A DNA stretch of 64,000 bases from Octopus bimaculoides (lineage: Eukaryota), in NCBI RefSeq assembly GCF_001194135.2, contig NC_068991.1, positions 15,045,761 to 15,109,760 on the forward strand, given 5' to 3'. A program made the translations under genes and the position numbers. The notes below the pieces were generated by a model, which was given only the letters and a program-made list of their open reading frames with translations, ran no database searches and was not told where the DNA came from. The stretch's first letter is position 1. Each line of letters starts with the position of its first letter. Positions 4,366 to 27,469 of the stretch are shown here, one piece after another.

Positions 4366-5395
4366 TTAACGGTGTCTTCCTATAGAAAGATTCCGGCAAA
4401 TAATGTCTCTCTTAATCTTGACGCTGTCGGGGAGTGGGGGCAAGTTGGTCACCGGTAGGGAATCATCCCCTTCGTCTTCGACTTCATATACCATGTACTC
4501 TTCACCAATGTCATCACAGCCAATACAGAAGTTATGTAGAACACACGCTAAGTGAATTATATCCACAATGGTGCTGAGATTCGTGGACTCAATGACCTTC
4601 AGTCTGCGGAACCGTCCATGGAGCAAGCCGAAGGCGCGCGTAATGACTTTCTGGACAGTCATCAGGCAACTGTTGTAATACTGTTGAGCGTCTGTCTTTG
4701 ACTCGGAGGTGTAAGGTGTGATCAACCAATCGAACAGAGGGAAGGCAGCATCACCAACCAAATGGTGCGAGTTGCACAAGTGTGCACCACGCTCCAGAAG
4801 GTGGCTATCAATGAGAGTTTGAAAGTCATGGAGACGACCAGCGTGTCCAGTTGAACAGAATATAAACCTCATATCCCGCTGGCAGGCAGCAATTAACTTC
4901 ACCGAGTAGTACCCGTTTTTATTGTAAAACTTCTCCCTATCATTGTCTAAAGCTTTCACCTGAATGTGTGTGGTGTCCAAAACACCAATGACATTCTTTA
5001 AATTACTCAGAGTCTCAAATTCTTGTGATATAATCTGCTTATCAGCGTCTTTCTCAGGCCATCGTATGAGATTCTCTTTTGACTTAGAAAGAAGAGCTTT
5101 CATTATTTTACTACGGCGATTAAGAAAAGACTCTTCAGTGATTGAAAAACGTTGACAGATTTCTGACAAAGTATCTTGGGAACCCATATACCATAGAACA
5201 GATAACAAACTTTTTTCCAAGGTCTCTGGTTGGCTCCCTCGTGCCATCTCAATTGCTTCAGGACACGTACGCAGGTAGCTGAACACTTTCCAAAACGTCA
5301 CAGACGACATCCGAAAGTTACTCTTGAAATCTGTCGACAACCATGAAGGTATATCCTCACTGTATTTTTTTAACTTCCGTCGATCGGCTTTGGAC
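4366..5395 (-). CDS. Harbinger/PIF transposase-derived protein (HARBI1-like, DDE_Tnp_4 fold), 342 codons plus stop after a phase-2 acceptor; probable terminal exon
   Basis: Uninterrupted ORF with family motifs FRMS, IGVLDTTHIQV, FYNKNGYYSVKLIAAC, GRLHD, LVGDAAFPLFDWLITPY, YN..L...KVITRAFGLLHGRFRRL and ACVLHNFC. Acceptor ttttttttcttctcaatatcag|GTCC at 5395; stop TAA at 4366-4368. Confidence 0.9.
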
Positions 5396-5568
5396 CTGAT
5401 ATTGAGAAGAAAAAAAAATTCGGATCGAAATACAGCAACAGGTGGAAGGAAAACTAAACTGAATGAAGAAGTACAGACAAATATCATTTAACATTTAAAA
5501 TAAAGAATGAGGCAGCTTGAATGGCAAACCAACAGCTCTCTACCAGATTAACTGCACTAGGATTAACA

Positions 5569-5636
<68 letters not shown>

Positions 5637-5833
5637 AGAGAAAGAGAAAGAAAGACAGCTAAAAAGGTAAAAAGATTCTTTTGATCGACACAAACATGTC
5701 ATAAAAGAACAAGGCAACTGACCATACGTATAGACAGAAACAAACTATCGCTAAGAACCTGTTGCTGAAATTTATCTAGGCCACACAGAAAGAGCTCTGT
5801 CTCTTAACTTTAAACTTCTATGATTGATATGGG

Positions 5834-6367
5834 NNNNNNNNNNNNNNNNNNNNNNNNNNNNNNNNNNNNNNNNNNNNNNNNNNNNNNNNNNNNNNNNNNN
5901 NNNNNNNNNNNNNNNNNNNNNNNNNNNNNNNNNNNNNNNNNNNNNNNNNNNNNNNNNNNNNNNNNNNNNNNNNNNNNNNNNNNNNNNNNNNNNNNNNNNN
6001 NNNNNNNNNNNNNNNNNNNNNNNNNNNNNNNNNNNNNNNNNNNNNNNNNNNNNNNNNNNNNNNNNNNNNNNNNNNNNNNNNNNNNNNNNNNNNNNNNNNN
6101 NNNNNNNNNNNNNNNNNNNNNNNNNNNNNNNNNNNNNNNNNNNNNNNNNNNNNNNNNNNNNNNNNNNNNNNNNNNNNNNNNNNNNNNNNNNNNNNNNNNN
6201 NNNNNNNNNNNNNNNNNNNNNNNNNNNNNNNNNNNNNNNNNNNNNNNNNNNNNNNNNNNNNNNNNNNNNNNNNNNNNNNNNNNNNNNNNNNNNNNNNNNN
6301 NNNNNNNNNNNNNNNNNNNNNNNNNNNNNNNNNNNNNNNNNNNNNNNNNNNNNNNNNNNNNNNNNNN
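5834..6367. other. Assembly gap directly upstream (minus sense) of the HARBI1-like exon; one of many N gaps, mostly at microsatellites
   Basis: Run of N. Confidence 0.99.
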
Positions 6368-6895
6368 TTTTTTTTTTTTTTTTTTTTTTGCTATCAAAAA
6401 TATTTTATCGCAATCAGAACAAAAATGAAACCATTCAAGCTAAAACCACACACACACACACACACACACGGCTAGAAGCTAAATCACGTTTCCAAGGCAG
6501 CAGCAATGATGCTCGTAAGTATTAAGTAGGCCATAAATACATTTACAAAGTTTAAATAATTGCACTACTTTCTACACAAAAGCCAATCAATATACTAACG
6601 CAGAAAACATTAGATTACACGGGGCTGATGAAGATGAAACTTAATTCGAGAGCAATGGGTATCTCTTAAAGGGAAATGAATGCACAATGGGTTAAAAATC
6701 TTAAAATTGAATTAAATGAAGTGAGAAGGGATGACTAACGAGTGTGTAGTAGTAGAATATGAAATAAAAACAATGAAAGACTATCTAAATAGTAATGAGA
6801 CGAAATGAGAGAATTTTGAATAGAGATTCAAAAAGAAAAAAAATAGAGGACGCGCTAAAAACAATTTATATTAAATAATTTTTTGACATTGAAAG

Positions 6896-7116
6896 CCTTT
6901 AGCATTCTGATTATTTTATCAAATATAATGCATATTTATTCGCATTGTTTTGAATTACTCATGCATTTATCTCAAAGGTTCAAGATTTTGATGGTGCGAC
7001 TGTTAACTTTTAGAAAGATATAGGATAAGTAGGAGAGGTTGACTCTGGCTGATTTGAATATAGAATCGGTAGAGTATTTGGGCTGGGTATGACCAGTTTA
7101 AATGTTAATGGGTTAA
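6896..7116 (+). mobile_element. Copy of the ~215-bp TTAA-flanked MITE
   Basis: cctttagcattctgatt...aaatgttaatgggttaa. Confidence 0.7.
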
Positions 7117-7334
7117 GGAGAATGATGGTTAGAACTAAGATAGATTACAAGGAACTGTTTAAAAAGAACAAAATTAGATTAATGCAGCCCAGCTAGAATA
7201 TTCCAGTTGAAAAACTTGGAAAACCTAACGTTACCAAAATAGTGAATCGATATCCAATGTAAGCACTTCACCTGCATGACTGACACAACCACAAGCTGGA
7301 TTCCCTTTCAACAATATCCTTATGTTGACTAATA

Positions 7335-7422
<88 letters not shown>

Positions 7423-7989
7423 ACGTGCGTATGTGGATGTGCGTGTGTGTGTTTATTGTTTTGTTTCAAATCACGGCCAAATATCCAAACATTATTTTCC
7501 CAGAAATAACTCCACTAAGTTACCAGAAAATAATGCTAAATAAAGTATGCTTTGAGGTAATGGCAAACCATATTCTCTCTTCCTTTATCAAAGGGACAGT
7601 TAATTCCTAAGGAAACAGTCGTGGCTCAGATGTCCATTCCCATGACTACATTTCATAGATCATGTCAAAATCTTTTGTAACAGTCAATGAATAATAAACA
7701 GAGTAACATATATATATATATACATATACATATATATATATATATATATAAAATTAAAAACAACAGCAATAAAATTACAAAAATTAATTCAACAAGCAAC
7801 CACATCCTAACTAATGCTCACAAAAGAATCATGCAAAATGATGGTAAAAGATTAATAGTCCATGTCAATTATTGGAACCTCCAACAGATTTTTAATTAGT
7901 GCCACATTTTAAACCATTTAATTAGTCCTTTATGTAGTTCAAATAGTCAAATAAAGAGATCCATTCAATCTTGAATATATATTAATATC

Positions 7990-8430
7990 ACCATTTTAAT
8001 TCTGTTTTCTCCATGCTTCCATGAGTAAGATGGTCCTTCTCTAGCACAACTTCTTAATACTTGTTGTAGTTCATCATCATCTCCTTCGTAAGGTCCACAA
8101 TTCTGAAATAAGCCTTCAGTTCTTTCCATGTCTTCCTTCAACTTTTTTCTTGAATCACTTAACACTTCTTTACGCAATTGCCATCTTCCATTGGCATTAC
8201 GCGTCTGCACCAGTGCAGTCTTCTCTCTTGCACACTACAACCAATTCCACTTAATCCTAATTTTTCTCTCAACTCATTTGTAAGCCACCATTCATGCACA
8301 CTTAACTAACATTACACATCCAAGGAAAAACATGTGTACTTCATTTCTTTTCAAGTCCAGCATATCCTCTACATTCAATGCCCAAGTTACATCGCTACAC
8401 ACTCTTTTGGAAGAATACAGAGCATGCAGA
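7990..8430 (-). mobile_element. RTE-like LINE C-terminal relic
   Basis: Similar to 3130-3600 (ALNVEDM vs ALNAEGM), with (CAT)n and ccatgc tail pieces. Confidence 0.5.
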
Positions 8431-9063
8431 AAATAGTTATGTATGTATGTATACATGTGTATGTGACAGAGATATATAGTGGTTACATATCCAAACTGAG
8501 GTTTCAATTTAATCAACATTTTGGTCAACTGCACACTGTGAACTGAGAAGAAAGATTTGCTGAAGGTGTAAATATGATCCCAGAGTTCTTGAACATCACC
8601 AGAACATCAGCTCAAGTTGTCACTGCTATATGGAGAAACACTACAGCATCTTTTCAGTATGTTTGGAAATAAAAGATCAAGAAGAGACTACCAGCATTAT
8701 ATGGGCAACAGTAAATGAAGCACCAGCATTTAGGAACAGATCTCATTTCAGTAACCTCTGTTTTATAGAGAAATCCCATATCAATCACCACCCTACTACA
8801 CCAATCCTCAACAGAACAAACAAATTTAATGACATTTGTCAGATATTTTTCAAAGAAAAAAAGACACTGACTGGTTATCTTAAACAAGTGACTTCAACAA
8901 TCACATAACATGAAGCGATAGCGATCACATTTTACAATGATTTCTTCTCAATTTGCCAATGTGTACAGTTGAGAAAAAGGGGCAACTGAACAAGACTGTG
9001 GTTCGGAAACATAAATCTGATTACCTTACATAAGAAAAAAATTATGCAAAACTCTAAGCTGTT

Positions 9064-9385
9064 CTACACAAAGTAATAATTACCACTTTTCAGTTTTATA
9101 TGAAAAAAAACAAAACAAAGTGTGTGTGAATATATAGAGAGAGGGACTAATGAAGACAAGAAAACAAGCATTGCATTATAAGGTAATGCCACATAATTAC
9201 AAAAAGAAACATTATCACTATGCCTGTGGTAACCAAACAATTTTGAACATTCAGAATTGATCGCTGACTGTAGACATTCTTCAAAATTCTTATGCAAAAA
9301 CTGTCTCTCCAAATAGTTGATTGAAGCAGCAAAATCTACAAACACCAATACAACAAAATCTAGAAAACCTAAATTTTTTTCATCC
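9064..9385 (-). CDS. Candidate terminal exon with a helical segment resembling the C-terminal half of a BEN domain (INYLERQFLHKNFEECLQSAINSECSKL)
   Basis: Frame is open from a phase-2 AG at 9385 (weak pyrimidine tract) or a phase-1 AG at 9335 to the stop at 9064, followed by about 500 nt of non-repeat UTR-like sequence. Domain resemblance is by eye only. Confidence 0.25.
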
Positions 9386-10355
9386 CTGCTTTTTAAAGAG
9401 AATCACCACAAGCTATTTCCCTTGTGCTGTTATTGGGCAGGGAGTTTCTTTTCATTTTCTTTTTTTTTTGTACATGCATGCAATTTTCTCTATATTTTTT
9501 TTCTTTCATATATACATGTAAATTCTTTCGGCAACTCCAAACTGCTCTCCATCAATTAATTATCCTAATTTTACATACCCACTTCAAAAAAACAGTTACA
9601 TTTTCAACCATGCATTTGTTAATTCCATGTCACCCAAGCAGCATCCACTAAGCTATTCAATTTTACTGCATGCTCAATGTATATGAAATGATATGTTCTA
9701 CTTTACATAATTGTCTAGAGATTGGCAACAAGAAACTTGAAATAACAATCTGTGAAGAATCTGCCAACCACATTTCACTAGCAAGGCATTGCTAGTGGCT
9801 GTGGTAGAAGACACTTGCCCAAGTAACCATGCAGTGAGTCACCACTGGGACCATGTGGTTTCAAAGCAAAGCTTGGTAATCACACATATACATTCACTTA
9901 TGTATATGTATACATGCACACACAATTTCTTTTCAAACGGGGGGGGGGACACTTCAGAGAGATTATAGTAACTTCTTAGAGCGGAGTTCATCATTTCACA
10001 TTGCTAGGTGACTACTACTCCCAGGTTCCGGCCTTCAGAAAAATACATTCAAAACATAACAAAAGAAAACAGAAGTGGAATATGTAAATTGTTAAGTGGA
10101 ACCTATGGAGAGTGAAATTAANNNNNNNNNNAGAGATTATAGTAACTTCTTAGTGCGGAGTTCATCATTTCACATTGCTAGGTGACTACTACTCCCAGGT
10201 TCCGGCCTTCAGAAAAATACATTCAAAACATAACAAAAGAAAACAGAAGTGGAATATGTAAATTGTTAAGTGGAACCTATGGAGAGTGAAATTAAATAGC
10301 ACAATGAGATCACTGCTAAATAATATCAACACTGAATGCAATTTTTCACGACTTT

Positions 10356-10386
<31 letters not shown>

Positions 10387-11227
10387 CAGCAGCAGCAGCA
10401 GCAGCAGCAGCTTGGCACACTTTCAACTCTGATAGACTAGATTTATGATCAAAGGCATTCCAGCCATGGCCAATCCCAAATACCCAAAAGGGTCCTTTTA
10501 TCCACAAGGAATTCTACAATATGAGGGATATATATAGCAATATCTTGTGGAAAGACAAGTAACAACCTAGAGGTTTCCACACTAACTTGCTGACATCCGA
10601 AACCAAAATAACAAATGATACTACTTTCTATTGCATAAATTCAGAGATGGATCAGATCCGAGATTATGGCATGCTGGAACTGAAAAACAAATTATATCAA
10701 CCTCAGCGCTAGTAGCCTAATATTTTATTCATCATCTTTCAAAAGGATAAAAAATAAAGTCAACCTCAGTTTATGTATATGTACATCAACTTTATATTGG
10801 AACTTTTTTCCCCCTGTATGTTTTCTAACTCTAACCTACTAGCTGGTACTTGTGTATTTTGATAAGCACATGGTGATCATTCTGTTTAAATAGATCAAAA
10901 ATAAATTGAAAAAAAAAAAAAATGGAAAAAAAAAAAAATGGAAAAAAAAAACAAAAGAAAAAATACAAGAAGAAAATGTACATAACTGCAATTATTTTCT
11001 TTAAATTGCAAACATGTAACTACCTACCCACAACTCTACTACTTCTACTACTACTACTACTACTACTACGACTACTAACACTACTACATTTTCGTTTATA
11101 GATGTCGCTAGCAGAGCACATTACTGAGAAACAGTGGACGAAACCAATGGCTAAAGTTTTAAAGGTAAAATCAAGAGACATCCATAGCAATTGGCTGAAC
11201 AAATACAACAAATAGCCAAACATATAT

Positions 11228-11265
<38 letters not shown>

Positions 11266-12084
11266 TGGAAAGAACAACAGTTGACAAAGAGACAGAGGAA
11301 AATGGTTCGAAATACTCTTTAGCACCACACAGCTAAAGACGGGTTAAGTTCTTTAAACCGCACATTTAAATCCCCCTTTTTTAAATTTTATTTTTTTATA
11401 TGACAAGAAGAAAATCTGGGCAGTATATAATAAACAACAGCATAGTGGAAAGAAGAAATACAGTATGCATGTGTGTGTGTGTATATATAAATATATACAT
11501 ACATATATATATAGATATACATATACATACACACATAAATGCACACACTACACTCATACTAAATTTGCATCAAGCAGCAATTCTACTAACATCTACTTGA
11601 AATTTAAAAAAAAACTTTTTTGTCAATAAAAAATTTTTTTGTTTTTTTTTTTCCATTTTGTTTTGTTTTGTTTGAATTTTTTTTTTTTTTTCAGTAACGA
11701 AAAGTAAAAGACAATAATAATTTATACAAACTTAGTGTCACTCGTAATTTACTCCTTTTTCAAGCTGCCCCATAGAATTAAATATATACAACACATGAAT
11801 GTAAAAAAAAAAAAAAAAAAAAANNNNNNNNNNNNNNNNNNNNNNNNNNNNNNNNNNNNNNNNNNNNNNNNNNNNNNNNNNNNNNNNNNNNNNNNNNNNN
11901 NNNNNNNNNNNNNNNNNNNNNNNNNNNNNNNNNNNNNNNNNNNNNNNNNNNNNNNNNNNNNNNNNNNNNNNNNNNNNNNNNNNNNNNNNNNNNNNNNNNN
12001 NNNNNNNNNNNNNNNNNNNNNNNNNNNNNNNNNNNNNNNNNNNNNNNNNNNNNNNNNNNNNNNNNNNNNNNNNNNNNNNNNNNN

Positions 12085-12121
<37 letters not shown>

Positions 12122-13101
12122 AGTTTATTCTTATTTTTCTTAAATATTTTTCTCTCCAAAAAATTTAAAAAACCTTATATGAAAAATAACTATATATAAA
12201 AATGTAATAAGAGCATAAAAAAATTGTGTATTTTAAAGGGTATATTTTTCATTAAAATTCCACAAATCACTAAAACAATTAAAAGAAATTCATTAAATGA
12301 TAAAATAAAAAAATTATTTAAAAATACTTTTTTTTGTTTATGTATTTATTTATTTATTTATTTATTTTAAAATACCAAAAATGAAGACTACTTAGAATAT
12401 ACAATGCTCTCAGTAAGAATTAAGTGCAGAGCGAGTACAGATACCGTTATCAAACACTCAAGGTTCCAGTAAGCAGATCTATTATTATTACCGTCATTGT
12501 GCATAATTATTGTTTCAGTTACACTCATAACAAATGCAGACCAGTTCCTCTTTCACATGAACAACAAAAGATACAAATACGACACGAAACGGAACAAAAA
12601 CAAAACAGCACTACAAGAAACAAAAACTGTGATAAAATACATTCGAATAACGTTGCTTAAGACTGGAATTAACAGAAGCTCTCAATATATCTATTGACTG
12701 TTTTTGCCAGCTTATTTCCATTGTAAGCAGAAAAATAATTATGTAATCTTTCGACAATTGAATGCATTTAATTAAGAGGCTGTCATTAATGATTTAAGTG
12801 GCTTTTACACACGAGTGGCATTGATAGGCTGACACTTTAATAAAAGAACACAGACCAGCATGGCTGTGTTGTTCAGCTTACTTTGCAATCATGTGGTTTC
12901 AGGTTCCATCCCACTGCATGACACCTAAAGGCAACTGTCCTCAACTATAGCCCTGAGCCAAGCTCTGCCCAGTGTTTCTTTAACTATGGCCTTGCGCTAA
13001 CCAATTCCTTGTAAGTGGAATTGGTAGATGTAACTGTAAAAAGTGTGTGTGTGTGTGCGCGCACACATATGTGTGTGCGTGTGTGTGCGCGCACACATAT
13101 G

Positions 13102-13169
<68 letters not shown>

Positions 13170-14559
13170 NNNNNNNNNNNNNNNNNNNNNNNNNNNNNNN
13201 NNNNNNNNNNNNNNNNNNNNNNNNNNNNNNNNNNNNNNNNNNNNNNNNNNNNNNNNNNNNNNNNNNNNNNNNNNNNNNNNNNNNNNNNNNNNNNNNNNNN
13301 NNNNNNNNNNNNNNNNNNNNNNNNNNNNNNNNNNNNNNNNNNNNNNNNNNNNNNNNNNNNNNNNNNNNNNNAAAAAAAAAAAAAAAACAGAAAAGAAAAG
13401 AAAACTATAAAAGTAAATTTAGCTGTTACTGAAAATGTTTGTTGATTATAAGAGCCATTCAGTCCATACCCGCCTGCAAAACGGACATTAAAAGGATGAT
13501 AATGATGATGATGATTAAGCAGTATTTAAAGACTTCTTGCTTTCTCCAAGCTATAATTTATTCATCATTATCTTTCCCCTGCCCCCACCATTTTTGAAGT
13601 CCATTTTTCCGGGTTTGCATGTCAGATGAAATCTGTTGAGGCTAAGTTTCTACAACTGGATGCCCTTCCTGTCACCAATCCTCACCTGTTTCCAAGTAAG
13701 ATTAATATTTCCCCCATGGCCAGTCATGCTTACATAGAAAACTGCACACAATCAACACTGCTTGTATGACAGTGAAGCTCAATTACAACTATCATGTGAC
13801 GTCAAGGCAATGGAACAAACACACATACATTTATGACTGGCTTCTTTTAGTTTACATCTACCAAATCCAATCACAGGGATTAGGTCAACCTACAGCTATA
13901 GTAGAAGAAACTTGCCCAATGTGACACAGTGAGACTGAACCCAAAACCATGCAATTGGGAAGCCAACTCCTTAACTACACAGCCATGCCTGCACCTATTT
14001 AAACACTCAGCCCTTTGAAACCATTAGTTAATTACACTGTGCTTCCATTGATGGATTTAAACACTGTCATGCTATCTACATGGCAACAGTCCAATGATTG
14101 ATGTTGGTAAAATTATAAAATGATTGACAAGTGTATTGAAACAGCATAAAAGAAGTGCTTTTGATCGGTGAAGGACACAAGTTGACAGGATCAACAGATT
14201 GATTCTTCTTCATGAGTCAATTGGGTGCAAGAAAACACAAGAGGCTAACAAGTCTTACTTTCTATCAGCAACACTTACAGATCATTTGAGAAAGTCGACC
14301 ACACAAATGTATTTTGTAAAAGTCAATAAACCGCCAAAGCAATGAAAGGGGGGGAAATATCAACAATAAAAAGACAAGGAAAATACAGGTAAAACATATC
14401 AAGAAAACAAAAAAAAAAATTGTGGGAGCATAAGAAGAGGAGAGATAGAGGGAGAATGTGCATGCATATACTAATCAGAATTATGCATTAAAAGTGTCTC
14501 ATAAGGAGTGACAAAAAAAAATGAATTATCAATAATTCAAATACAATTACACCTGGACA

Positions 14560-14595
<36 letters not shown>

Positions 14596-16098
14596 CATCT
14601 TTCATTCACCTCAACACATTATTTTCTCTGTCCATTTTTTTTTTTCCTCTTAATCCATTCTATCGAAGAGAGTAGATTCAAAACGTAAAAGACATTTCTA
14701 TTCTTCCCGAGCATTAAACTAATACACCTGCTTGTTGTTCCTACACCTGTCTTCGCCTTTTGCTTTCTGTAAATTTGAACTATACATACATATATGTGTG
14801 TGTGTGTGTGTGTGTGTGTATACACACACACACACACACAACCTTGATTTACAAATGCTTCTCATTATGAACAAGTGGTTTATGAACAATTTTTTAAACA
14901 TAAAACTTCTCGAGTGACATAAATGTTTCAAGTAACAAACACACAAGCTAGGAACAATGGTTGGCAACAAGCTAGAAGCATCAGCAAGATGGTCTCCACT
15001 GTATATTTATATTCAAAATGCTACTCAAATGAATAAACTGATTGCAATGTGTGTTCTCTCTAACCCAGAGGATAGGTAGGTACTGATGAAGCCCAAATTT
15101 CCTATAAATGAAGACCAAAACCTGCCCCTCTCCTCAACAAAAATAACATTACCCACAAGTGTCTGGTACTTTATCTGCCATAGTTATATCTCCTACATGT
15201 AGACTTGACAAACTGTAATGCAGTTTCACACAATAGATCATCAATCAGTCATGATTGTCTGATGATCCGTTTCATGAAACTCTAAATAACAGTTTGCAAA
15301 GTTTTTACAGCTTCAATAAAATACCATTTTACCCTACCTTTGGTATTAAAGGACTATATTTCCATCTTGTTTTGCACCTATGTGCTCACACCTATGTGTT
15401 TATGGGTGTGCATGAGTGTATGTGTGTGTTAAATATATATATATATATATATGTGTGTGTAGAGAGATATACACACAATTGTGTGCACATACTCCTGCAT
15501 ATTTATATGCACATTTAACTAACACAGTCTTACACAAAAACAGTGCAAGTTTGAAGAATTTTCAGTAAGAAATAAAAGTGCCACTACATGAAAATTATAT
15601 ATATATGGAAAAGAAAAGAAAAAAGCTATTCATATTTTCAAACAACATTGTGTTCAAAGAATCATTCCATGCTCTATTATTGTTATGGATTAAGTCTTAG
15701 AAGAAGCAAGGGGAAGAGAAAGAGAAGGGGTANNNNNNNNNNNNNNNNNNNNNNNNNNNNNNNNNNNNNNNNNNNNNNNNNNNNNNNNNNNNNNNNNNNN
15801 NNNNNNNNNNNNNNNNNNNNNNNNNNNNNNNNNNNNNNNNNNNNNNNNNNNNNNNNNNNNNNNNNNNNNNNNNNNNNNNNNNNNNNNNNNNNNNNNNNNN
15901 NNNNNNNNNNNNNNNNNNNNNNNNNNNNNNNNNNNNNNNNNNNNNNNNNNNNNNNNNNNNNNNNNNNNNNNNNNNNNNNNNNNNNNNNNNNNNNNNNNNN
16001 NNNNNNNNNNNNNNNNNNNNNNNNNNNNNNNNNNNNNNNNNNNNNNNNNNNNNNNNNNNNNNNNNNNNNNNNNNNNNNNNNNNNNNNNNNNNNNNNNN

Positions 16099-16485: not shown

Positions 16486-16597
16486 TCAGCCACTTAAGCT
16501 AAGAACATCATCATCATCTTCAATGTCATCTTCCTCATCATCATTGTCGTCATCTGTGCTATTGTCATCATGTATGCAAACATGCATATTTTCAATG
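16486..16597 (-). CDS. Candidate short acidic terminal exon (IENMHVCIHDDNSTDDDNDDEEDDIEDDDDVLSLSG*)
   Basis: Acceptor ttcttttaattaaactccaccag|C in phase 2, open to TGA. Could equally be a decayed (ATG)n retroposon tail. Confidence 0.22.
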
Positions 16598-17009
16598 CTG
16601 GTGGAGTTTAATTAAAAGAAACAAGCACTAAAAGAATACTTTCAAGTTTCTCAACGCTGAGTTTCCTATTTCATTTGTGAAACATGGTTACCAAATCTAA
16701 CATACTTCTTCCTCAACACACTGCTGCTGCTGCTGCTGTTGTTGTTAATCTTGCAAACCCTGAACAAGCAGACCTATAAATTGAGGGCCCTCTTGTTGTG
16801 ACCGCTAAGAATCATTTTCAGACATTATCTAATGCATTCCTTTGATAGCTTATTTTCTAAATATTGTGGAGTGTGGTTTGAAGATCTGCTTGCTATTTCT
16901 GGCAGGTCAAAAGATTGCACACACACACACACAGAGGTGCCATTAACCACTCGGTGGTTCTAGCAGGAAAGGAGTTGTCAGCATTGATTGGGTCCGAATC
17001 AACCCTTAA

Positions 17010-17229
17010 CCCTTTCGTTACTGTATTTATTTTGAGACGCTCTGTGTTTCTTTCAATTACTTTAAATATAACAAAGAATTTAGTAAAATAACTTAGTTAT
17101 CACTAAGCTAAGTTAGGAACATAAATTGTGACTAAGGTTTGGTGGAAGATTTTAATTCAAAATTTATGAAAGCAAGACATTTGTACTACAGAGCCAGAGG
17201 CGGTTTCAGCCGGGTTGGTAACGAAAGGG
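17010..17229. mobile_element. 220-bp piggyBac-type MITE
   Basis: 12-bp TIR CCCTTTCGTTAC / GTAACGAAAGGG flanked by TTAA on both sides (17006-17009, 17230-17233). Confidence 0.85.
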
Positions 17230-17298
17230 TTAATGAAGAATGAGTGCGATTAAAAGCAAAAAAACGTTCCCACCACAGAACATCCTGTTGTATTATTC

Positions 17299-17513
17299 TT
17301 GCCAGTACCCGCCTGACTGGCCCTCATGCCGGTGGCACGTAAAAGCACCCACTACACTCTCGGAGTGGTGTGGCGTTAGGAAGGGCATCCAGCTGTAGAA
17401 ACTCTGCCAAATCAGATTGGAGCCTGGTGTCGCCTCCTAGTCTACCAGTCCTCAGTCAAATCGTCCAACCCATGCTAGCATGGAAGGCGGACATTAAACG
17501 ATGATGATGATGA
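17299..17513 (+). mobile_element. Short copy of the RTE 3'-UTR repeat family
   Basis: Same consensus, (ATG)n tail. Confidence 0.85.
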
Positions 17514-18340
17514 GTAAGGTAGCGAGCATCCTGAATTCAAATGCTACTTAGGTAAACTTTGCCCTTTATCTTTTCGGTGTCAATAAAGCAAGTACTAGTC
17601 AAGTGCAGTGGTGGACGTAATCAACTTGCTCCCTGCCCACATCTATTGCTGGCCTTGTGTCAAAATTAGAATTAAAATAATTCAAGAATTGGCAGCTATT
17701 TCTGGTAAATTGAGAAAGCAGCAACCCTCACATTTGCTTTTGCCCATAGGTAGTCAGTCTTCTGTCATTAAACTCCATTTCTAGTATGCCTCTGACCAGC
17801 AATTCAACACTTGCTCATCCACACAGTATCAGCATCAATTCTATTATTCAGTATCAGCATCAATTCACATTATTTTCTCTACCATCCCCATCACCTACCA
17901 AATGCCTAGCTGTGTTAAGTTCTTTGTTATTACCATCACTCTTTCTCTCTCTCTCACACATACACACACACACAAAGAGAGGAACATAACACATAATGCT
18001 GAATGCAGTTGAATCATTCATCTCCAATCACATCTACTTTTCATTTTAATTTCTTTCAATCATAGGCTTGCAGTCATGTTGCGGTGCCACCCTGTAATGT
18101 TTAGTCAAACAAATCTAGACCCCAGTAACAATTTTTTTAAACTGGTACATATTCCATTGAACTCTTCTGAACAGTTAAATTACTGGGTCACAAACAAACC
18201 AACACCAGCTGTCAGGTGCTAGGGAAGAACAAACACGAAACAAAGACACTCACATACATATATATATTATTGGCTAAACTGGCAACATGACCATCCCCAA
18301 ATACAACAATATATATATATATTAAAACATAAGGTAAAAA

Positions 18341-18566
18341 CATTATTTACATTTGACGGATATTTGTCCTCATCTTGTTTGTTGTTAACACAACGTTTCG
18401 GCTGATATACCCTCCAGCCTTCGTCAGGTGTCTTGGGGAAATTTCGAACCTGGGTATATCAGCCGAAACGTTGTGTTAACAACAAACAAGATGAGGACAA
18501 ATATCCGTCAAATGTAAATAATGTAAATAACGTTAATAATTCCTCATCTCTTAAATATAGAACTGT
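18341..18566 (-). mobile_element. Penelope-like element remnant with a 72-bp inverted arm and 12-bp target-site duplication
   Basis: Perfect inverted repeat 18341-18412 / 18452-18523. ATAAGGTAAAAA at 18329-18340 and 18567-18578. Contains the CTGACGA...CGAAACGTT motif typical of PLE pseudo-LTRs. Confidence 0.75.
18387..18432 (-). ncRNA. Minimal type-I hammerhead ribozyme motif
   Basis: Minus strand reads GACAC-CUGACGA-A-GGCUG(10 nt)CAGCC-GAAAC-GUU-GUGUU: helix I 5 bp, helix II 5 bp, core intact, palindromic AACGUU helix III. Confidence 0.65.
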
Positions 18567-18983
18567 ATAAGGTAAAAAATCAGATATTAATTAATATCGA
18601 TTTATTACCAGGAAGCTAGCACCTTGAAAGAATCAAAGGGATTCAGAAAAAATATCTGAGATCTCAGGGGATTAATGTAGATGTGTATATATAACGACGA
18701 CCACTAAGTGGACAGTTAATGAGCTAGAAGAAGATCACATGTAATGTGTCTACTAAGACCTAATAGTTCTCAAATGAAATTCAGCGAAATACCAAACCGT
18801 ATGCGGGCATATATATATATATCTTACTAAAATTGACTTGAAACCATGGTACAGAATATAGATCGGTAATTGTTTTTATTTTTCATTCCCTTTCGAAATT
18901 ATCCCTACTTTTTGTGGTATGTAGTCTTGCTGCTATTTCTAGCGGGTTTCGATGTCCTATTACAGGCATCTCTGTATTTTAAA

Positions 18984-19023
<40 letters not shown>

Positions 19024-19617
19024 CACACACACACACACACAACAGGTTTCCATACAGTTTTGATTAGCCAAATTCCCTCAGAAGTACTGATTGGCCACAG
19101 TTTATGGTAGAAGAGACCCACAAAATACCATACAGTGGGACTGAGCCTGATAGCACATGGTTATAGAGCAGGCTCCTTGACCACAGTCATGCCTGAGCAG
19201 TTTCATTTCACCATGTTAGACTAGTCACAATTGCTGAGTTTACATGTTGTCAGTCGCCTATATATTATACTGTTATGAGTTGAACCATGCTATCAACTAG
19301 GATCAGCTGATAACAAGGTTCAGTCACACTCATTTATCAGTCAACAAAGCTGATAAAAGGAGAACGAGTCTGCAGACTAATTAGTCTGCAGACTAATTTG
19401 CAAAATGACAGCTAATTTGTTGCCTTCGTTATTTATATACATAACTTTGACTATTTTAGCAATTGTTTATTTTTTTGTTGTTGTTGTTGATTTTTGGTTT
19501 CCTTTTGAGGAATAATGATTCAATGACAACATTATCCAAAATGTGGTTTTATTTGTATGTAAATATATGTGTGTGTACGTAAATGTGTATTTATTTGTGT
19601 GTATGTAAATATATATT

Positions 19618-19900
19618 TGTGTCAGTGCCGCTGGACTGGCTCTTGTGCGGGTGGCACATAAATACACCATTTCGAGCATGGCCGTTGCCAGTAGCGCCTG
19701 ACTGGCCTTCGTGCCGGTGGCACGTAAAAGCACCCACTACACTCTCGGAGTGGTTGGCATTAGGAAGGGCATCTAGCTGTAGAAACTCTGCCAAATCAGA
19801 TTGGAGCCTAGTGTAGCCATCTGGTTTCACCAGTCCTCAGTCAAATCGTCCAACCCATGCTAGCATGGAAGGCGGACGTTAAACAATGATGATGATGATG
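19618..19900 (+). mobile_element. Short copy of the RTE 3'-UTR repeat family
   Basis: Same consensus with two internal subrepeats, (ATG)n tail. Confidence 0.85.
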
Positions 19901-22227
19901 TAGATATGTATTTATTTATGGTTGATGTTAGGAAGGGCACCCAGCCATAAAATCCCTGCCAAAACAGACACAGTAGCCTAAGGTAGTTTTTCTACCTGAC
20001 CGGCTCTTGGTCAACCATCCTACCCATACATGGAAGAAGGACCATTAAGCAATGATGATGATGACGATATATAGGCAAATCAAAAATAAAACTAAAAACA
20101 ACAAAATTCAAAAGGATGCACAGAGTAAAATGTATTAGGTTGACGCTCAGTTTAAGAATGGAAACAAGAGCGGGGTGTAAAGTTTTGAGCATGGCTCTTC
20201 ATCAGAAAGAGGAGGAGGAGGAGAAAGATCCAGAGAGCACATGTCTGATTACATGGCTGAAGCGACCAGAAATGGAGAAACACACACACACACACNNNNN
20301 NNNNNACATAACACATACGCACACATCATTGTCTTGTTTTAATGTCCACTTTTCCATGCTTGTATGGGTTAAAGAGTTTATTGAGGTTTATTTTCTCTGA
20401 CCAGATACCCTTCAGGTCACCAAAAAGCAAGGCAATATTTGCACCATGGTCAGACATTCTCACAGAATACTGGAAATGAATGACAGTTTGTAGGATAGCT
20501 GTAAAAGTGTGTGGCTATTATCAGTTTGTATGACAGCCACATGCTTTTACAACTATCACATAAGGTCAAGAGAAGCAGATGCTCACTAACACACACATAC
20601 ACAAATATATATAACTGGCTTCTGTTTCCTTCTACCAAATTCACTTACAAGGCATTGGTCAGTCCAGGTCTACAATACAAGACACTTGCCCTGGGTGTCA
20701 CACAGCCTTCAATAAATTTTGAAGAATTTGGTGGGAATCAGTAAAATGACATTTTTGTTAGTAGTTTGACATTTAGAATCTTGCAGATCTGAACAAAAAA
20801 GCTTAGACACTTAAAATAAGATATAGGGTGGAATAGGGTATCACAGAAGCAGTCTTGGACAGATTTGGTACTGACAGGGTGAAAACCATGGCAAACTATC
20901 CCTGAGATAAGAAGTTAGTCAATCAGACTATCAGATAAAATAAGTTAATGCAATAGGACAACATGGTGGATTGATTTACAAAAAAATAGCGACCAAATCT
21001 CCTTCAAATTACATACTTTAAAAATAATAATGCAGCTTTAAGGCTATTTAATTGAGAAAGCATTTTGCAGCTCTATGATTTTGGGTTCAATCTCACTGCA
21101 ATGCACCTTAAGCTCCCCCTAGGGCTTAGCAAGCTTGTTGTGCATGTGCCTGTGTGTATATATGCACATATGTACATGTGCATATGTGCACGTATACATT
21201 TGATTCTGCGTGTGCTCACGTTAACAGCACCTGAGCAGCACTGATGTCGTTTCTATTCCTGATAAACAAATCTGGCAGCTTGTCAGTTGAACGTGCATAA
21301 GCAGGGAATACAACAGCTTACTTGAAAACAGGTGTGGGTTGGCCAAAAAAAGGGACTTCTGGCCACAGAATATTTCCTCAAGAAAGTTCCATCGAACCCA
21401 TACCAAAATGGGGGGGGGGGTCAGCATAAAAACGATGATGATAACGATGCTGAGGAAGTTTGCCAGGTTAAGAAACATTAAAGTATATAACTAACCATAA
21501 TTCAATATTCAACAAACTCCAATAACAAATTAATTTTCAATACAAAGAACTTTTTCAAACAATTCATCTGCTTATTTACAAGATACAACAGACTTTTTTT
21601 TTTTTTTTTTGAAGAATCTTAATTTCATTATTAATTAAATCACATCAATTTACATTTTCAACTTACAATATTATTCTCCTCGTTTGAAAAACAAAAATAT
21701 CAAATTATAAATAATATGAATAATAAATGAATTAAAATAAAATGCATTAAACATGGAAAAGATTCCGTAATATATTCATTAACCAAATTATTCTAACGTC
21801 ATCAGCCTTAATGTTTCGTTTATCCCAGATTTCCATAGGTTACAGAAGAATCAATTATTAAAATACTTGAATTTACATTATTATACAAATGAAGAAGTTC
21901 TCAATGAAAACTCTCGAATGAGACATTCATGCGAACAAGATAAACAAACAAAAAAACGAATAGACACAACAACAACAACAACAATTGTTAAGTAGATGAT
22001 ATATATAAAACATGGTAGCCAGCCCATTGTGTAAACACACATGAAGAAAACAATGTAAGGCAAGAATAAATAAATATACTGAAAATCCAATAGTCAATAA
22101 AAGAATCAATTCCAACGTAACTCTAACTGAAACAAGCAACTTAATGTACTGCACAAAAACATTAGGCTGCAATCAAATCACTAGGAATTTCAGCTTTAGA
22201 GAACTTAAATATGTAGTGGATTATAAT

Positions 22228-22457
22228 TTAACCCTTCAGTATTCAGGTTATTCTATCAAATGTAATGCTTATTTATTTGCGTTGCTTTTGATTGATCACA
22301 CGTTATCCTGTGGCTTCAAGATTTCAATGATGTGACTGTTTATTTTTAGAATGACATTGAAGGATATAAGCATGAGAGGCCAGATCTGGTTTGGTTTGAA
22401 CATAAAACAAGTAGAATATTTCAGGGCCTGATATGGGGTGGTTTAAATAATAAAGGG
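22228..22457 (+). mobile_element. Copy of the ~215-bp TTAA-flanked MITE
   Basis: ttaacccttcagtattcagg...tttaaataataaaggg. Confidence 0.7.
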
Positions 22458-22739
22458 TACTTGAATGCGAAATATACATCATGTTAAACCAACAAGGGAA
22501 TCTCTACGTAGGTGATTTAGCTGCTACTACCAGCATCAAATTTGCAGTTGTTAAGAATGCTGGTTAAACATCCTGTGCCTGTTGGTTCAATTCTTTATAT
22601 TCTGAGTTCAAATCCTACTGAGATTAACCTTGCCTTTCATCTTTCCAGGGTCAATAATTACGTATCAATCCATGGCAATGGATTGACAAAACTGTTAGGG
22701 AGTCAGGCAAGATAGTTTGCAATATCTGTTCAAGATCTT

Positions 22740-23150
22740 TGTATACCGGCAGTAATGATTGTAACAATACTGGTGCTAAGCTGTATCACCCCAAAACAGC
22801 AGCATTTCCCTTGGATAAACATAGGTAGCATAGAGAGAGGGGAGACTTGCATTCATGTCGAACTGCCTTTTTTCCTCAAAACAATCTTGCCCAGATCTGA
22901 GCATATATGTATAGATGTATGGTCAACCTTGTCAAATGAAAACCAAGGCCCCTGAGAGTACCATCTGTGGTCTCTTATCAAACATGACCACTTTGTGCCA
23001 GTCTTTGCTGCCATGGCTGTCTCCCTAGCAGCTTTGATCAGCTGTTTGGGTTCCAAGCCAATCTTTTGCAGTAAACAATGTATTCATCTTGCTGGCTTCA
23101 ATGAGAATGAGATTGCATTCCTTTCTTTGGTCAAGTTGTGATATTTCTAG
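22740..23150 (-). mobile_element. Highly decayed CR1/L2-type reverse transcriptase relic
   Basis: FSFDKVDH resembles DFAKAFDKVDH; multiple stops and frameshifts. Confidence 0.4.
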
Positions 23151-24185
23151 CCACATTACACCTTGTACTGATGTGTAACATTAAGTAAAAGATCAGTTTG
23201 TACACATGAAGAGCCATACTGTCTATTTGACAGCCACAAGTACATTAGTGATAAATTAGTTTACTGACCTCCTACCCAAGCAATCGGTTGTGTTATAGAT
23301 AACTTGTCTGAGGTTAGACAATTGAACTATGAATAGTTAAGGCATTACAAATCAGACAAGACATCTAACCAAACACTAACATTTCCATCAAACATTAACC
23401 CAAACACACATTTTTACTCAACTGAAGTCGGGGTTGAAGAAGGACGAGCTTCACCAAGTTTAAAATGCCCAAGTCATGCCGTACGTCACAACTGGGCCCC
23501 TATACAAGCCCACCGAGAACTGATGGCAAACTACATTGTAGGAACTACAGATTCCTTTAACACAAGTTTTCACAAATTTATAGGAAAACAAGATTAGATT
23601 TTGAAACATCATTTCATTTGTAAATGATGAAAAAAATGAATTCAAGTAATTAATAAATGCTAATGAATTGTGCTGACAAGGAATTAACAGTCTGCTCTAT
23701 TATGTATATGGAGTTCATTTGAATGGAACTAATAAATAACTACCAAATTATTCTTCAAAAATTCTAAAGGAAAAAAAGATATGTTTACCAATCATCGATG
23801 TAATGCATTTAATTGTTTGAACATTGTCTCTCTCAATTCCAGTTGCAAAGATTTTTTTTTTTTAAAGAATGCCAGCTAAGTTGGTGAGGAAGAGGGTTTG
23901 ATTAAAAAAATTATAGATGCTTATTCAGAATGGGTGTGATAAGGTTAGAACAACTTCTGGCATTTCTGGTAACAACTTAATTTACCAGAACCCTGCAAAA
24001 TTGTGGGAAACTCAATCACTTGACTATGTTTTTTCCATTCTAAAATTGGTTAAGGGGAAAATAAAAACGAATTCTTAAGAGAACATTATTATGAACACTA
24101 GTACAAAAGTATCTTAGTTCTTGCACTCTAAATCACCATCATCAGCAGCAGCAGCAGCAGTAGTAGCAGTAGTAGAAGTAGTAGT

Positions 24186-24400
24186 AAGGTAGCAAGCTTG
24201 CAAAATTGTTAGCACATTGGACAAAATGCTTAACAACATTTGTTCTGACTCGTCAGATTACGAGTTTGAATTTCACCGAGGTCAACTTCACTTCATTCCA
24301 CCAGGGCCAACAAAATAAGGTACCAGTTAAGTACTTAGAGTCGAAGTAACTGACTTGCTCCTCCTCTCAAAATTGCTGGCGTTGTGCCAAAACTTGAAAC
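24186..24400 (+). mobile_element. Third SINE-like family (~210 bp)
   Basis: aaggtagcaagcttgc...gagtttgaatttcaccgaggtcaact...aaaattgctggc. Related copies at about 17515-17680, 22560-22680 and 10660-10760. Confidence 0.65.
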
Positions 24401-25407
24401 TTTCAAGGCAGAAGCTTCGTAACAGCTGCAATGTTAAGTGGTGGGTTACTGTTCAGATCAAGTTTATCTTTTAAACAAAGAACAAATTCCACTCCACCCG
24501 CTTTATGACTTAAATAAATAGGTAACATCTGGCTGTAAATGGTTCCCACACATTAGACCCCATGACATACTAGAAATAGCAGTTAAAAAGTGAATAACAA
24601 TCTTAACATGTTAACTGCCAAAACCTGTTACTTGAACTTACTAGTGACGCCATGTATTTCCAGTCATACCATATATTGTTTAATTACAAGGAAATGTCAA
24701 ATTTTTAGCATTTTTGCAATATGTCATAAGTAACCTCTAATATTTCGCTCTTATGTTATTTAAATATCCTGGAAACAATGTCAAAGATACACATTCAGAA
24801 ATCATTTCTATGCAGAAAAAAAAACAGAAGGCTCAGTTTGCTCTTAGAGAAAGTGTGCTGAATCTGAGGAGTAAAAACAGGTGAGGGTTGGCAACAGGAA
24901 GTTCATCCAATCATAAAATCTTGCCATATTAAAGCCCTGTGCAACCCAAACTAGCATAGTAAAACAAATATGAAACAAACAAACAAATGCTTATACAAAC
25001 AGGACTAACTCCCCATTCTTACAAATGTACAAGAATGTCCTTACAAAGTTTAATAAAGATTTGTATTTAAAAAACAATAGGAACATTCAATTCATTCATC
25101 ATCATTTTCATCAATTTGGATCTGCTATTTCATGTTGATAAGGATTTAATTCTCAACTTTATCTGTTCTTTTTCCCTGGCCATATGAAACAAATTTACAT
25201 TCAAAATTGTAAAATATATTTTGCACTAAAAAACAAAACTTATTTTCATTACACACACAATGATATGAACAATAAAAAATTCATCTCATTGTGGACAATA
25301 TTTTCCTAATACCATCAAAATCATTATAAATATTTTGATGCCTGTTTTATTCATGTTGATATGAGGAGACAGGCATATATGAGATACATGTAAATATAAA
25401 AGTCCAT

Positions 25408-25454
<47 letters not shown>

Positions 25455-26027
25455 TATGTGCACAAAATAGGGGTCATCACAAACACCACAGCACGCAACC
25501 CATCTAATAAATGCAATAATGGATACAGGAGAGAAGAGTCTCTTTAATCCTGTCACAGAAAACCTCTTGAATGTACGGCAAAATTCCTCTGGTATATTCA
25601 ATAACATGGTTGCTATTAGAAAGAATACCCAACCGACATGCTAGAATGAAGGAGGCGCAAAGGCCATATCATAGGCCATCAACCTATTTCTCTAAGCACA
25701 ACAAAACCAACTTTTTATAAAAATGAATCTTGTGACCTGAATCTGACATCTCTAAATTGGACACATCTGTGTACAATGTTATTTCCACACTTGACTGAAA
25801 TCTAAACAATAACACAATTCCCCTTTCAAATTAAACAAAATCTTTCAACAATAACCTATCAACTCACAGCCTACAAACATGCTTTCTTCCTATCCTCTTC
25901 TATCCCCTTTCCTATACATCTACTCCTTAGACATGCATACATACATGCCTAATTATCATTTCACACAGCTTCACATACCCCAGAAAAACAGCTTGCCAAA
26001 CACTATATAACTTGACATAAAAACAAA

Positions 26028-26062
<35 letters not shown>

Positions 26063-26072
26063 NNNNNNNNNN

Positions 26073-26117
<45 letters not shown>

Positions 26118-26651
26118 CTCTTTTTGCCTTCATCAGACAATCAAAACAAGGCAGCTAAGCTGAAACTTTCAAGTTAATGCCAACCTTTTCTATGTGAAAA
26201 AATGAAATACGATAGCCAACAGTAATGTATTGAGTGACACTCCAATTAACATTTGATTGTACTTTTGTAGCCATACATACAAAACAAGCATTGATATATG
26301 TCTGTGAGTGTGTATATGTGGCTGTGTTTGGATTTATAAACGTGAGGTAAAAAAATTTCAACATATGTATAGAATCAGGTTTATTTATTTGAAGCTCTAG
26401 CTTCCCCTCCATGAACACAATGGAAACAAACTTATGCAGAAGTGGAGGGAAGCTACAACTAAAAAGAGAATATATATTTACATACATTTGTATATATACA
26501 TACAAGCAGGTATGTATGTTCACTTTTTAGTTAAGCCCTCCACTATGTAGAGTGACCATTTTATATATATATATATTGCGATTTTGGATTTGGTTGGCGA
26601 GATTCTTTATGTGAGTTCGTGTGCAGAAGCATATTCTGTTGTGTCTGGCAA

Positions 26652-26890
26652 GAGTCATTCTCTTTTAGTGCCTTATAATTTAACATACTCACTGGTGAAA
26701 TTTCCACTCATTTACTTATTCATTTTCATAAAATTTTCGTTGTCTTGCAACCTTTTCAATAGATGTTGACTCAACAACTAGTGAAAATGTTGCAAGACGC
26801 AAAGAAAATTTTAGAAACATAAATAAGTAAATGCGTGGAAATTTCACCAGTGAGTATGTTAAATTATAAGACATTAAAAGAGAACGACTC
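26652..26890. repeat. Imperfect foldback with ~105-bp arms
   Basis: The core ttataatttaacatactcactggtgaaatttccac is perfectly inverted at about 26835-26870. Confidence 0.85.
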
Positions 26891-27249
26891 TCCCCTAAAT
26901 ATTTATATAAATATGCAAATATTCATATCTTAAGTTCTATTTTCCTGTTTGCATCACACCATACCTGTGAGCATGCATATGCATATATATATATATATAT
27001 ATATATATACTAGACGAAGAGCAAATGCAGTTACAAGATAAACATATACCTTAACAAGTTCACAACAGATCTGCAAATGGAACAACTACTGCCATCACGA
27101 TAGAAGGACTTCATGTGAGAGTGTGATGCTGTGCGTCGGAGCAGAACAGAACAGGAGAAAGGTGACTAGGTAGACAGACACACAAAAAAAAAATTTTTTT
27201 TTTCTTCTTTTTTTTTTGGGGTTTTTTTTTCGTTTTGAAATTTACTTAC

Positions 27250-27469
27250 CAATCAGAACTTGCAGGTCGTGGTGGCGGTGTGCCGTTCTTTGCCATGTCT
27301 GGCCAACTGTGTGAACTCATGTCGGAATGAGAACCTGGTGACATATCTACGTTGCTAGTTTGGGGACTGCGCTGTAGCATGTGCTGAATCTGACCTCGAA
27401 GGGCATTGAGTGGGGTTTTCTCAACAAGGTTCTCGGGAGTTTTAATACGACTCAACGCAGCAGTCCAAC
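27250..27469 (-). CDS. TRIM33: Internal coding exon of the same TIF1-like gene (Ser/Pro-rich linker: WTAALSRIKTPENLVEK...PPPRPASSD)
   Basis: 220-nt open frame with coding-like GC and CpG content. Acceptor ttttcttctttactccaaag|GT (phase 1); strong donor GATTG|gtaagt (phase 2). Same strand and downstream of the B-box exon; assignment to this gene is inferred from position. Confidence 0.75.

Follow-up and report, generated by a model that had tools for sequence, protein, structure and literature searches.

A probable ancient fusion of a TIF1-type tripartite-motif gene with a Harbinger transposase in octopus and cuttlefish

Fusion genes in which host exons are spliced to a transposase are an acknowledged source of new regulators but have been documented mainly in tetrapods. 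In CSB-PGBD3, the ERCC6-piggyBac fusion of primates, a whole transposase open reading frame (ORF) lies downstream of host exons, has a 3′ splice site just upstream of it and serves as the terminal exon; this fusion of the host N-terminus to the entire transposase has been conserved by purifying selection. Cosby et al. are said to have described, in 2021, further fusion genes of this kind in tetrapods, for example KRABINER, SETMAR and POGK, which reportedly were born by splice capture. Here we analyze a similar arrangement in a mollusc. The sequence is a stretch of 64,000 nt from Octopus bimaculoides (NC_068991.1, positions 15,045,761 to 15,109,760, referred to below as the window; the chromosome is CM046611.1 of GCA_001194135.2). 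The window contains an intact HARBI1-like ORF, which very probably serves a tripartite-motif gene of the TIF1 family as its last coding exon. The gene would then be a real and ancient fusion of the TIF1-type RING, B-box and coiled-coil (RBCC) region with a Harbinger transposase, and not a young transposon.

The resemblance to CSB-PGBD3 lies in the layout and in the conservation under purifying selection. The partners are different: piggyBac is joined to a SWI/SNF ATPase in primates and PIF/Harbinger to a TIF1 RBCC region in cephalopods. The primate fusion is also only about 43 million years (My) old, whereas the one described here is coleoid-wide, and coexistence with a parental isoform is known for CSB-PGBD3. 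With the other tetrapod fusions the cephalopod gene would share its origin, a transposase ORF captured through splicing by host exons that lie before it, and, putatively, the reuse of the module for targeting. Those genes mostly combine KRAB, SCAN, SET or BTB domains with transposase DNA-binding domains and many recruit TRIM28, which is a TIF1 protein, whereas in the mollusc the TIF1-type scaffold itself is fused and the transposase is Harbinger. No description of a TRIM/TIF1-Harbinger fusion was found in the full-text literature, the coverage of which excludes most subscription papers, and a long-conserved host-transposon fusion of this type does not seem to have been described previously. 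The finding in octopus and cuttlefish extends host-transposase fusions to molluscs and joins two families with known chromatin roles, TIF1 and the domesticated Harbinger proteins.

The latter are represented by HARBI1 of vertebrates (acting with NAIF1) and by ALP1 (with ALP2) and HDP1 (with HDP2) of plants. Like them, the cephalopod module is a single-copy, syntenic DDE_Tnp_4 gene under selection for which a role in a chromatin complex is plausible, and ALP1 also has a degenerate catalytic triad. However, HARBI1, ALP1 and HDP1 are stand-alone proteins, whereas the cephalopod Harbinger is a C-terminal module of an RBCC protein; HARBI1 in addition keeps its DDE triad, which is D-D-T in the cephalopod module. 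Judged by identity and not by phylogeny, the module is about 30% identical to proteins named HARBI1 and 31-36% identical to anonymous Harbinger transposases. The features of a vertebrate HARBI1 orthologue are thus absent, as the identity is no closer, the protein does not stand alone and the DDE triad is broken. The name 'putative nuclease HARBI1' given to the octopus protein in RefSeq is similarity-based and probably misleading, and the present data correct this annotation. N-terminal fusions were also seen in other proteins with a Harbinger domain (P0111, P0200 and P0184), where the partners are Myb_DNA-bind_4, THAP and DUF6589; none of these proteins has B-boxes.

The ORF occupies positions 4366-5487 of the minus strand and matches Pfam DDE_Tnp_4 with E=9.5e-27. 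As a 3′ terminal coding exon it extends from 5395 to 4366 and comprises 342 codons and a stop codon (4368-4366). Approximately the first 130 codons make up an N-terminal helical part resembling a helix-turn-helix (HTH), and the DDE_Tnp_4 core lies at about 4980-4531. The acceptor reads ...TTTTTTTTTCTTCTCAATATCAG|G (CAG|G), with the first exon base at 5395, and is in phase 2. Two upstream donors are in phase 2 as well: GAT TG|GTAAGT, with the last exon base at 27250, and CCT AG|GTAAGT, with the last exon base at 38335. In a preliminary description of this locus these three sites had led to the proposal that the ORF is spliced in frame downstream of TIF1-type RBCC exons. Upon recomputation all three coordinates and phases proved exact, and the proposal agrees with RefSeq protein XP_014777370.1 and with a spliced RNA contig from cuttlefish, L010.

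A match in phase alone would occur by chance in one case out of three. What goes beyond chance is the presence of the junction in an independent RefSeq model and in spliced RNA from another cephalopod order. XP_014777370.1 ('putative nuclease HARBI1', 386 aa, Octopus bimaculoides) contains the predicted junction 27250>5395 (SSD-W-SKADRRK) exactly, within MLQRSPQTSN...PASSDW|SKADRRK, and its residues 45-386, the C-terminal 342 aa, are identical to the exon in the window. The protein falls into the same 90% cluster as the octopus ORF. The exon upstream of this junction, referred to below as the linker exon, lies at 27469-27250 of the minus strand (220 nt, acceptor AG at 27471-27470, donor GT at 27249-27248). 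It encodes 74 aa, (G)WTAALSRIKTPENLVEKTPLNALRGQIQHMLQRSPQTSNVDMSPGSHSDMSSHSWPDMAKNGTPPPRPASSD(W), is included in both XP_014777370.1 and L010, and is 77% identical to the cuttlefish exon, with a proportion of nonsynonymous differences (pN) of 0.128 and a saturated proportion of synonymous differences (pS) of 0.755.

The intron between the two exons (5396-27249, minus strand), as set by XP_014777370.1, is 21.9 kb long and holds seven assembly gaps. The homologous cuttlefish intron is 10.6 kb long and has GT-AG ends, and a tblastx comparison of octopus with cuttlefish detected no conserved coding block inside the octopus intron; the linker exon and the Harbinger exon were the only conserved blocks. 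All gaps between 5396 and 27249 are intronic, and neither 27469-27250 nor 5395-4366 contains a single N. A second copy of the locus, reached via the RefSeq protein (L020), is 100% identical to the window with the same gaps and adds 5.6 kb past the window start. Logan contig L001, which comes from a sister Octopus species and has 96% nucleotide identity, continues colinearly through the gap at 5834-6367, and a cuttlefish contig free of gaps has the same exon order and strand as octopus. Frame continuity is therefore not an issue for the junction 27250>5395.

The TIF1-type exon is located further upstream, at 39763-38335 of the minus strand (1429 nt; acceptor AG at 39765-39764, donor GT at 38334-38333; phase 1 in, phase 2 out). 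It encodes the last CxxC of a RING (CPTC, at the start of the exon), B-box 1 of the Trim66 type, B-box 2, a coiled coil, a polyglutamine (polyQ) tract and a conserved VKTNSVYYPPSGVP motif. Pfam matches were obtained for zf-B_box (E=2.8e-15, two stretches) and zf-B_box_Trim66. The succession of two B-boxes and a coiled coil is that of the TIF1 subfamily (TRIM24, TRIM28, TRIM33, TRIM66 and Drosophila Bonus), and the exon is 35-44% identical to TIF1-alpha/TRIM33 proteins over about 300 aa, TIF1-alpha and TRIM33 being the best named matches. Canonical TIF1 proteins end in a PHD finger and a bromodomain, and the RING is absent in TRIM66. The cephalopod gene shares with a canonical invertebrate TIF1 locus a conserved linker motif as well, whereas a C-terminal PHD-bromodomain was not found in the loci searched and the known 3′ end is the transposase domain. 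The polyQ tract (about 38510-38670, minus strand) is encoded by CAG/CAA, counts more than 40 Q with few H and follows the coiled coil; in the cuttlefish mRNA polyQ is present at the same place and also in the next exon.

A 90% cluster from cuttlefish contains Acanthosepion pharaonis CAE1312692.1 and the 409-aa product of L010, a Logan contig from SRR25158145. Frame 0 of L010 is open from the first base through the transposase to the stop. The contig reads, in order, polyQ followed by VKTNSVYYPPSGVPPGQFTQPQ|R, an 80-aa Q/P-rich exon, G|WTATLNRMKTP...PASSD|W, the SKDDRRK transposase and the stop. Its 5′ part (polyQ...VKTNSVYYPPSGVPPGQF) has its homologue in octopus at the 3′ end of the RBCC exon (window positions 38543-38346, motif VKTNSVYYPPSGVPAGQF), and the two end at the same phase-2 Arg codon. 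In a genome contig of cuttlefish (ENA ERZ21867824) all three junctions of L010 coincide with GT-AG introns, which measure 4.6 and 10.6 kb. The splice pattern of L010 means that a spliced decapodiform mRNA joins a homologue of the TIF1 exon to the Harbinger exon, and the octopod RefSeq model has the same terminal junction. An in-frame chimeric spliced transcript is thus found in L010 together with XP_014777370.1.

In cuttlefish genome contig L012 (ENA ERZ21867824), at about position 9940, the A-run in AAGTTAAAAAAATAC has one base fewer than the same run in the short Logan contigs L003, L013 and L015-L019. This leads to a frameshift after SKDDRRKLK, which is probably a homopolymer error of the assembly and not a real disruption.

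The cuttlefish data also clarify which donor feeds the Harbinger exon. Both 27250 and 38335 had been put forward, and only the former has support. Splicing straight from 38335 to 5395 would keep the frame, yet nothing was found that supports it; the cuttlefish mRNA passes through two intermediate exons. The donor at 38335 (phase 2) is out of frame with the acceptor at 27469, which needs phase 1, so that the frame requires, ahead of the linker exon, a middle exon that is about 242 nt long, is entered in phase 2 and is left in phase 1. In cuttlefish this exon corresponds to nt 270-511 of L010 and to about 5136-5384 of genome contig L011, 4.6 kb upstream of the linker exon. Relaxed tblastn, a scan of ORFs and composition, and tblastx against the cuttlefish locus detected no middle exon in the readable octopus window. 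It is expected at 30639-33906 of the minus strand, most likely inside one of the gaps there (30639-31253, 31978-32560 and 33597-33906). The transcript, accordingly, runs from the RBCC exon 39763-38335 through the Q/P-rich middle exon and the linker exon 27469-27250 to the Harbinger exon 5395-4366; for octopus, the connection between the RBCC exon and the 74-aa exon is taken from the cuttlefish RNA and exon homology. The reconstructed protein has the order (RING) - B-box 1 - B-box 2 - coiled coil - polyQ/linker - Harbinger HTH and RNase-H-like core. This arrangement is older than the split of octopus and cuttlefish, for which published estimates are about 250-300 My.

The position of the translation start provides a further indication. 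The first in-frame Met past the acceptor is codon 29 (FRM) and lies inside the conserved N-terminal helix region, as the preliminary description had pointed out. The 28 codons ahead of it encode protein that is 83% identical between octopus and cuttlefish. Upstream of the acceptor the cuttlefish frame contains a stop and no in-frame ATG, and the length of a poly-T run differs between contigs, which shifts the frame there. Taken together, the conserved 28 codons, the absence of a cuttlefish ATG and the variable poly-T mean that the Harbinger ORF must be translated from upstream. The ATG at 5487 (MIFVCTSS...) was considered as a start of its own and rejected, as it is not conserved in cuttlefish.

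Several points weigh against the fusion as reconstructed. No single sequence was seen that contains both the B-boxes and the transposase: the 5′ end of L010 lies in polyQ, and the RefSeq model begins with a Met inside the linker exon. The RNA support consists of one assembled contig and one computational gene model, and the other Logan contigs are all unspliced. The protein collections that were searched contained no full-length chimera. For the first half of the RING, neither tblastn nor a regular-expression scan up to position 64000 gave a hit in the window, and none was obtained in L020 or the cuttlefish loci; this part may be hidden in a gap or be located outside the window. As the middle exon is missing from the octopus assembly, the frame from 38335 to 27469 depends there on cuttlefish, and the function proposed below is drawn entirely from analogy. 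With regard to the missing full-length protein, the search with the RBCC exon returned no cephalopod orthologue and no protein above about 650 aa. A collection that shows no full-length TIF1 proteins provides weak evidence when a full-length chimera is absent from it.

The same points could be read as indicating a separate gene, with a promoter inside or after the RBCC exon and a product consisting of a Q-rich N-terminus and the transposase only, so that no TRIM-transposase chimera would exist. The start of the RefSeq model at the linker-exon Met, the fact that L010 falls short of the B-boxes and the absence of a full-length chimera from the databases agree with it. Nevertheless, L010 is open to its first base and breaks in the CAG/CAA repeat, a typical place for an assembler to stop, while the homologous octopus segment is part of one uninterrupted exon with the B-boxes. 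The shared region has no conserved initiator Met, and a middle exon hidden in an assembly gap would account for the internal Met with which the RefSeq model begins. We therefore consider a separate gene distinctly unlikely. Under the preferred reading, a TIF1-type fusion, XP_014777370.1 is probably a 5′-truncated model and a fragment of a protein of about 1000 aa or more.

The preliminary description had also named two findings that would speak for an ordinary transposon, namely a first exon or promoter of its own, for example in the gap at 5834-6367, and near-identical copies with terminal inverted repeats (TIRs). Neither was observed. In L001 the place of the 534 N at 5834-6367 is taken by 410 nt of sequence without exon-like content. 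An exhaustive HMMER scan of 1.84 billion representatives yielded one cluster only above 36% identity, and a word-indexed search yielded two 90% clusters only, one from octopus and one from cuttlefish. Around the Harbinger ORF no TIRs were detected, the only inverted repeats being microsatellite-derived; TIRs with a 3-bp target-site duplication and multiple copies, which characterize autonomous Harbinger elements, are thus lacking. Homology to cuttlefish reaches no further than the stop codon on one side and 75 nt ahead of the acceptor on the other. The octopus-cuttlefish tblastx comparison gave no conserved block beyond the two exons that could represent a second ORF (Myb/SANT-like), for which no dedicated search was made.

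Comparison of the Harbinger exon with the sister Octopus species gave a ratio of nonsynonymous to synonymous substitution rates (dN/dS, omega) of 0.053 at a dS of 0.118. The exon is 76% identical to its cuttlefish orthologue, with pN 0.149 and pS saturated at 0.78; the orthologue is syntenic in order and strand and the acceptor junction is kept. The gene is single-copy and under purifying selection, as expected for a domesticated low-copy gene and not for an active transposon. A young or active Harbinger element that landed incidentally in an intron, with frame and acceptor matched by chance, or an artefact of assembly or annotation, could draw on the one-in-three chance of a phase match, on the frequency of AG after T-runs in AT-rich introns and on the many gaps in the window. 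This explanation is extremely improbable in view of the syntenic cuttlefish orthologue with a conserved junction, the omega of 0.05, the restriction to a single lineage, the lack of TIRs, the loss of the catalytic Glu described below and the spliced RNA contig with three GT-AG junctions.

Analysis of the catalytic residues showed that two Asp are retained (D140 at 4975-4977 and D215 at 4750-4752, minus strand), whereas the third catalytic position, Glu in the DDE triad, is Thr (codon 252, ACG, 4639-4641). A neighbouring conserved Lys is replaced by His (4618-4620). In an alignment of 94 relatives Glu was found at the third position in 69 sequences and Thr in none, and the neighbouring Lys was kept in 84. 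Both substitutions are common to octopus and cuttlefish. The transposase module is nevertheless predicted with high confidence to fold, as its AlphaFold2 model (pLDDT 92.3) consists of N-terminal helices and an alpha/beta core. A sequence search of the PDB with the module gave no match, and Foldseek detected nothing significant, the best hits being Mos1, Metnase and HIV integrase at E of at least 0.04. Because the catalytic Glu is missing, the module is probably catalytically disabled and probably does not work as a nuclease.

These observations suggest how the gene may have arisen and what it may do. A Harbinger element would have inserted downstream of the linker exon in an ancestral canonical TIF1 gene before octopods and decapodiforms separated, and an acceptor just upstream of its ORF would have captured it. 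The transposase fold would then have been retained for binding and not for cutting DNA. Harbinger transposases rely on a Myb/SANT partner for DNA targeting. By analogy with HARBI1-NAIF1, ALP1-ALP2/PRC2 and HDP1-HDP2, the module would most likely bring DNA, or a partner that binds DNA, to an RBCC scaffold that is oligomeric and acts as an E3 ligase or co-repressor. In such a protein the RBCC part would provide oligomerisation and scaffolding, and the dead transposase would target DNA or a partner, likely through a Myb/SANT protein similar to NAIF1 or ALP2, in place of or alongside histone reading by a PHD-bromodomain. The TIF1 protein TRIM28 is a co-repressor that silences transposons in vertebrates. 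It is conceivable, though as a whole rather unlikely, that coleoids have in this gene a one-polypeptide analogue of the tetrapod KRAB-ZNF/TRIM28 system: a TIF1 scaffold targeted to DNA by a dead Harbinger, directly or via a Myb/SANT partner, possibly at scattered sites derived from Harbinger TIRs, with the PHD-bromodomain possibly replaced and the 3′ splice site under a deeply conserved RNA element. The gene may bear on cephalopod-specific gene regulation and offers a test system for the retargeting of an E3/co-repressor scaffold by a dead transposase.

It had been suggested in the preliminary description that the Harbinger exon is an alternative one, which swaps the PHD-bromodomain reader for a transposase. 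This part was not borne out by the loci searched. No PHD or bromodomain exons were present in the window, in the 5.6 kb beyond it or in the 32 kb cuttlefish locus; in octopus the search covered 38 kb downstream of the RBCC exon and these 5.6 kb (about 44 kb in total), which is about 10 kb past the Harbinger exon. When proteins and transcripts were searched with a profile for other continuations of the linker exon, a fragment of a genomic ORF was all that came up. As a positive control, the same query located a PHD exon at E=1e-16 in L021 (10001-20841, ENA ERZ24900295 ctg5550l), at a distance of 8 kb past the RBCC exon. L021 is the closest RBCC homologue outside the cephalopods (43% identity) and has a canonical layout, with the RBCC exon, a LVKTNNIYFPPSGL exon (12589-12630) and PHD-finger exons at 19249-19413 and 20740-20841; no Harbinger exon was found within 10 kb. 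The motif VKTN..Y.PPSG is common to the cephalopod gene and this canonical locus. The PHD exon of L021 and the shared motif exon mean that a canonical TIF1 gene was the ancestor of the cephalopod one and that the negative PHD result is meaningful.

The sequence around the acceptor shows unusual conservation. Despite saturation at synonymous sites, octopus and cuttlefish can be aligned over an intronic element of about 75 nt (5396-5470, minus strand), which ends in a polypyrimidine tract and the CAG acceptor, but not over the 3′ untranslated region or the introns on either side of the linker exon. A 6-7 nt indel in the poly-T indicates that the element is non-coding. On the exon side, third-codon-position identity is 0.73 in the first 30 or so Harbinger codons and 0.30-0.57 elsewhere. 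The conserved block across the acceptor is thus about 165 nt long (window 5305-5470, minus strand; L012 about 9840-10007; L003 689-864) and may be a splicing-control element, as nucleotide constraint of this kind at an acceptor suggests a regulated exon. An RNA hairpin at the 3′ splice site, pairing intronic poly-U/CUUC with exonic GGAAG...AAAAAAA, was predicted as well; with z-scores of -0.7 and -1.3 and no covariation it is unsupported.

Two versions of the fusion have to be weighed against each other. In one, a canonical PHD-bromodomain isoform of TIF1 coexists, its exons lying more than 10 kb downstream, and the Harbinger exon is a regulated alternative, as in CSB-PGBD3. The acceptor constraint just described, both in the 75-nt intronic block and at third positions, is typical of regulated exons; in the established model, reportedly that of Cosby et al. 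(2021), splice capture necessarily begins as an alternative isoform; the introns here are 10-22 kb long, which makes distant exons plausible; and the closest non-cephalopod homologue carries a PHD exon. Against it stand the absence of PHD or bromodomain exons from the searched octopus span and from the 10 kb after the cuttlefish Harbinger exon, with a positive L021 control, and the fact that neither an NCBI gene model spanning the locus nor a protein in which the linker exon continues otherwise was found. We regard this version as possible, somewhat short of probable. In the other, the Harbinger exon is the only 3′ end, and the PHD-bromodomain was lost from this gene and is possibly kept in a paralogue. 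Such a replacement agrees with the searches, all of which were negative for PHD and bromodomain exons and for other continuations, and with the positive control in L021. However, the downstream view covers 10 kb and the octopus sequence is gapped, the intronic and exonic constraint at the acceptor suggests regulation, and complete loss would be unexpected unless a paralogue exists, as TIF1 proteins are generally important. The replacement is again a tentative reading, and the odds of the two versions are roughly equal.

Other elements were noted in the window. An interspersed repeat is present in several copies on both strands (19467-19830, 44319-44814, 49571-49909 and 54441-54835); its pseudo-ORF text includes ...LDALPNANHSESVVGAF..., and one copy gave no Pfam match. 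In all, Pfam searches with five window ORFs other than the Harbinger one were negative. Two short ORFs without a Pfam match at E<=0.01 resemble known elements by eye: one at 47858-48178 of the plus strand looks like a mariner-type transposase (HPPYSPDLAPVDFQLFP), and one at 3938-4201 of the minus strand, just downstream of the Harbinger exon, looks like the reverse transcriptase of a long interspersed nuclear element (FGFVPGRGTTDAIF).

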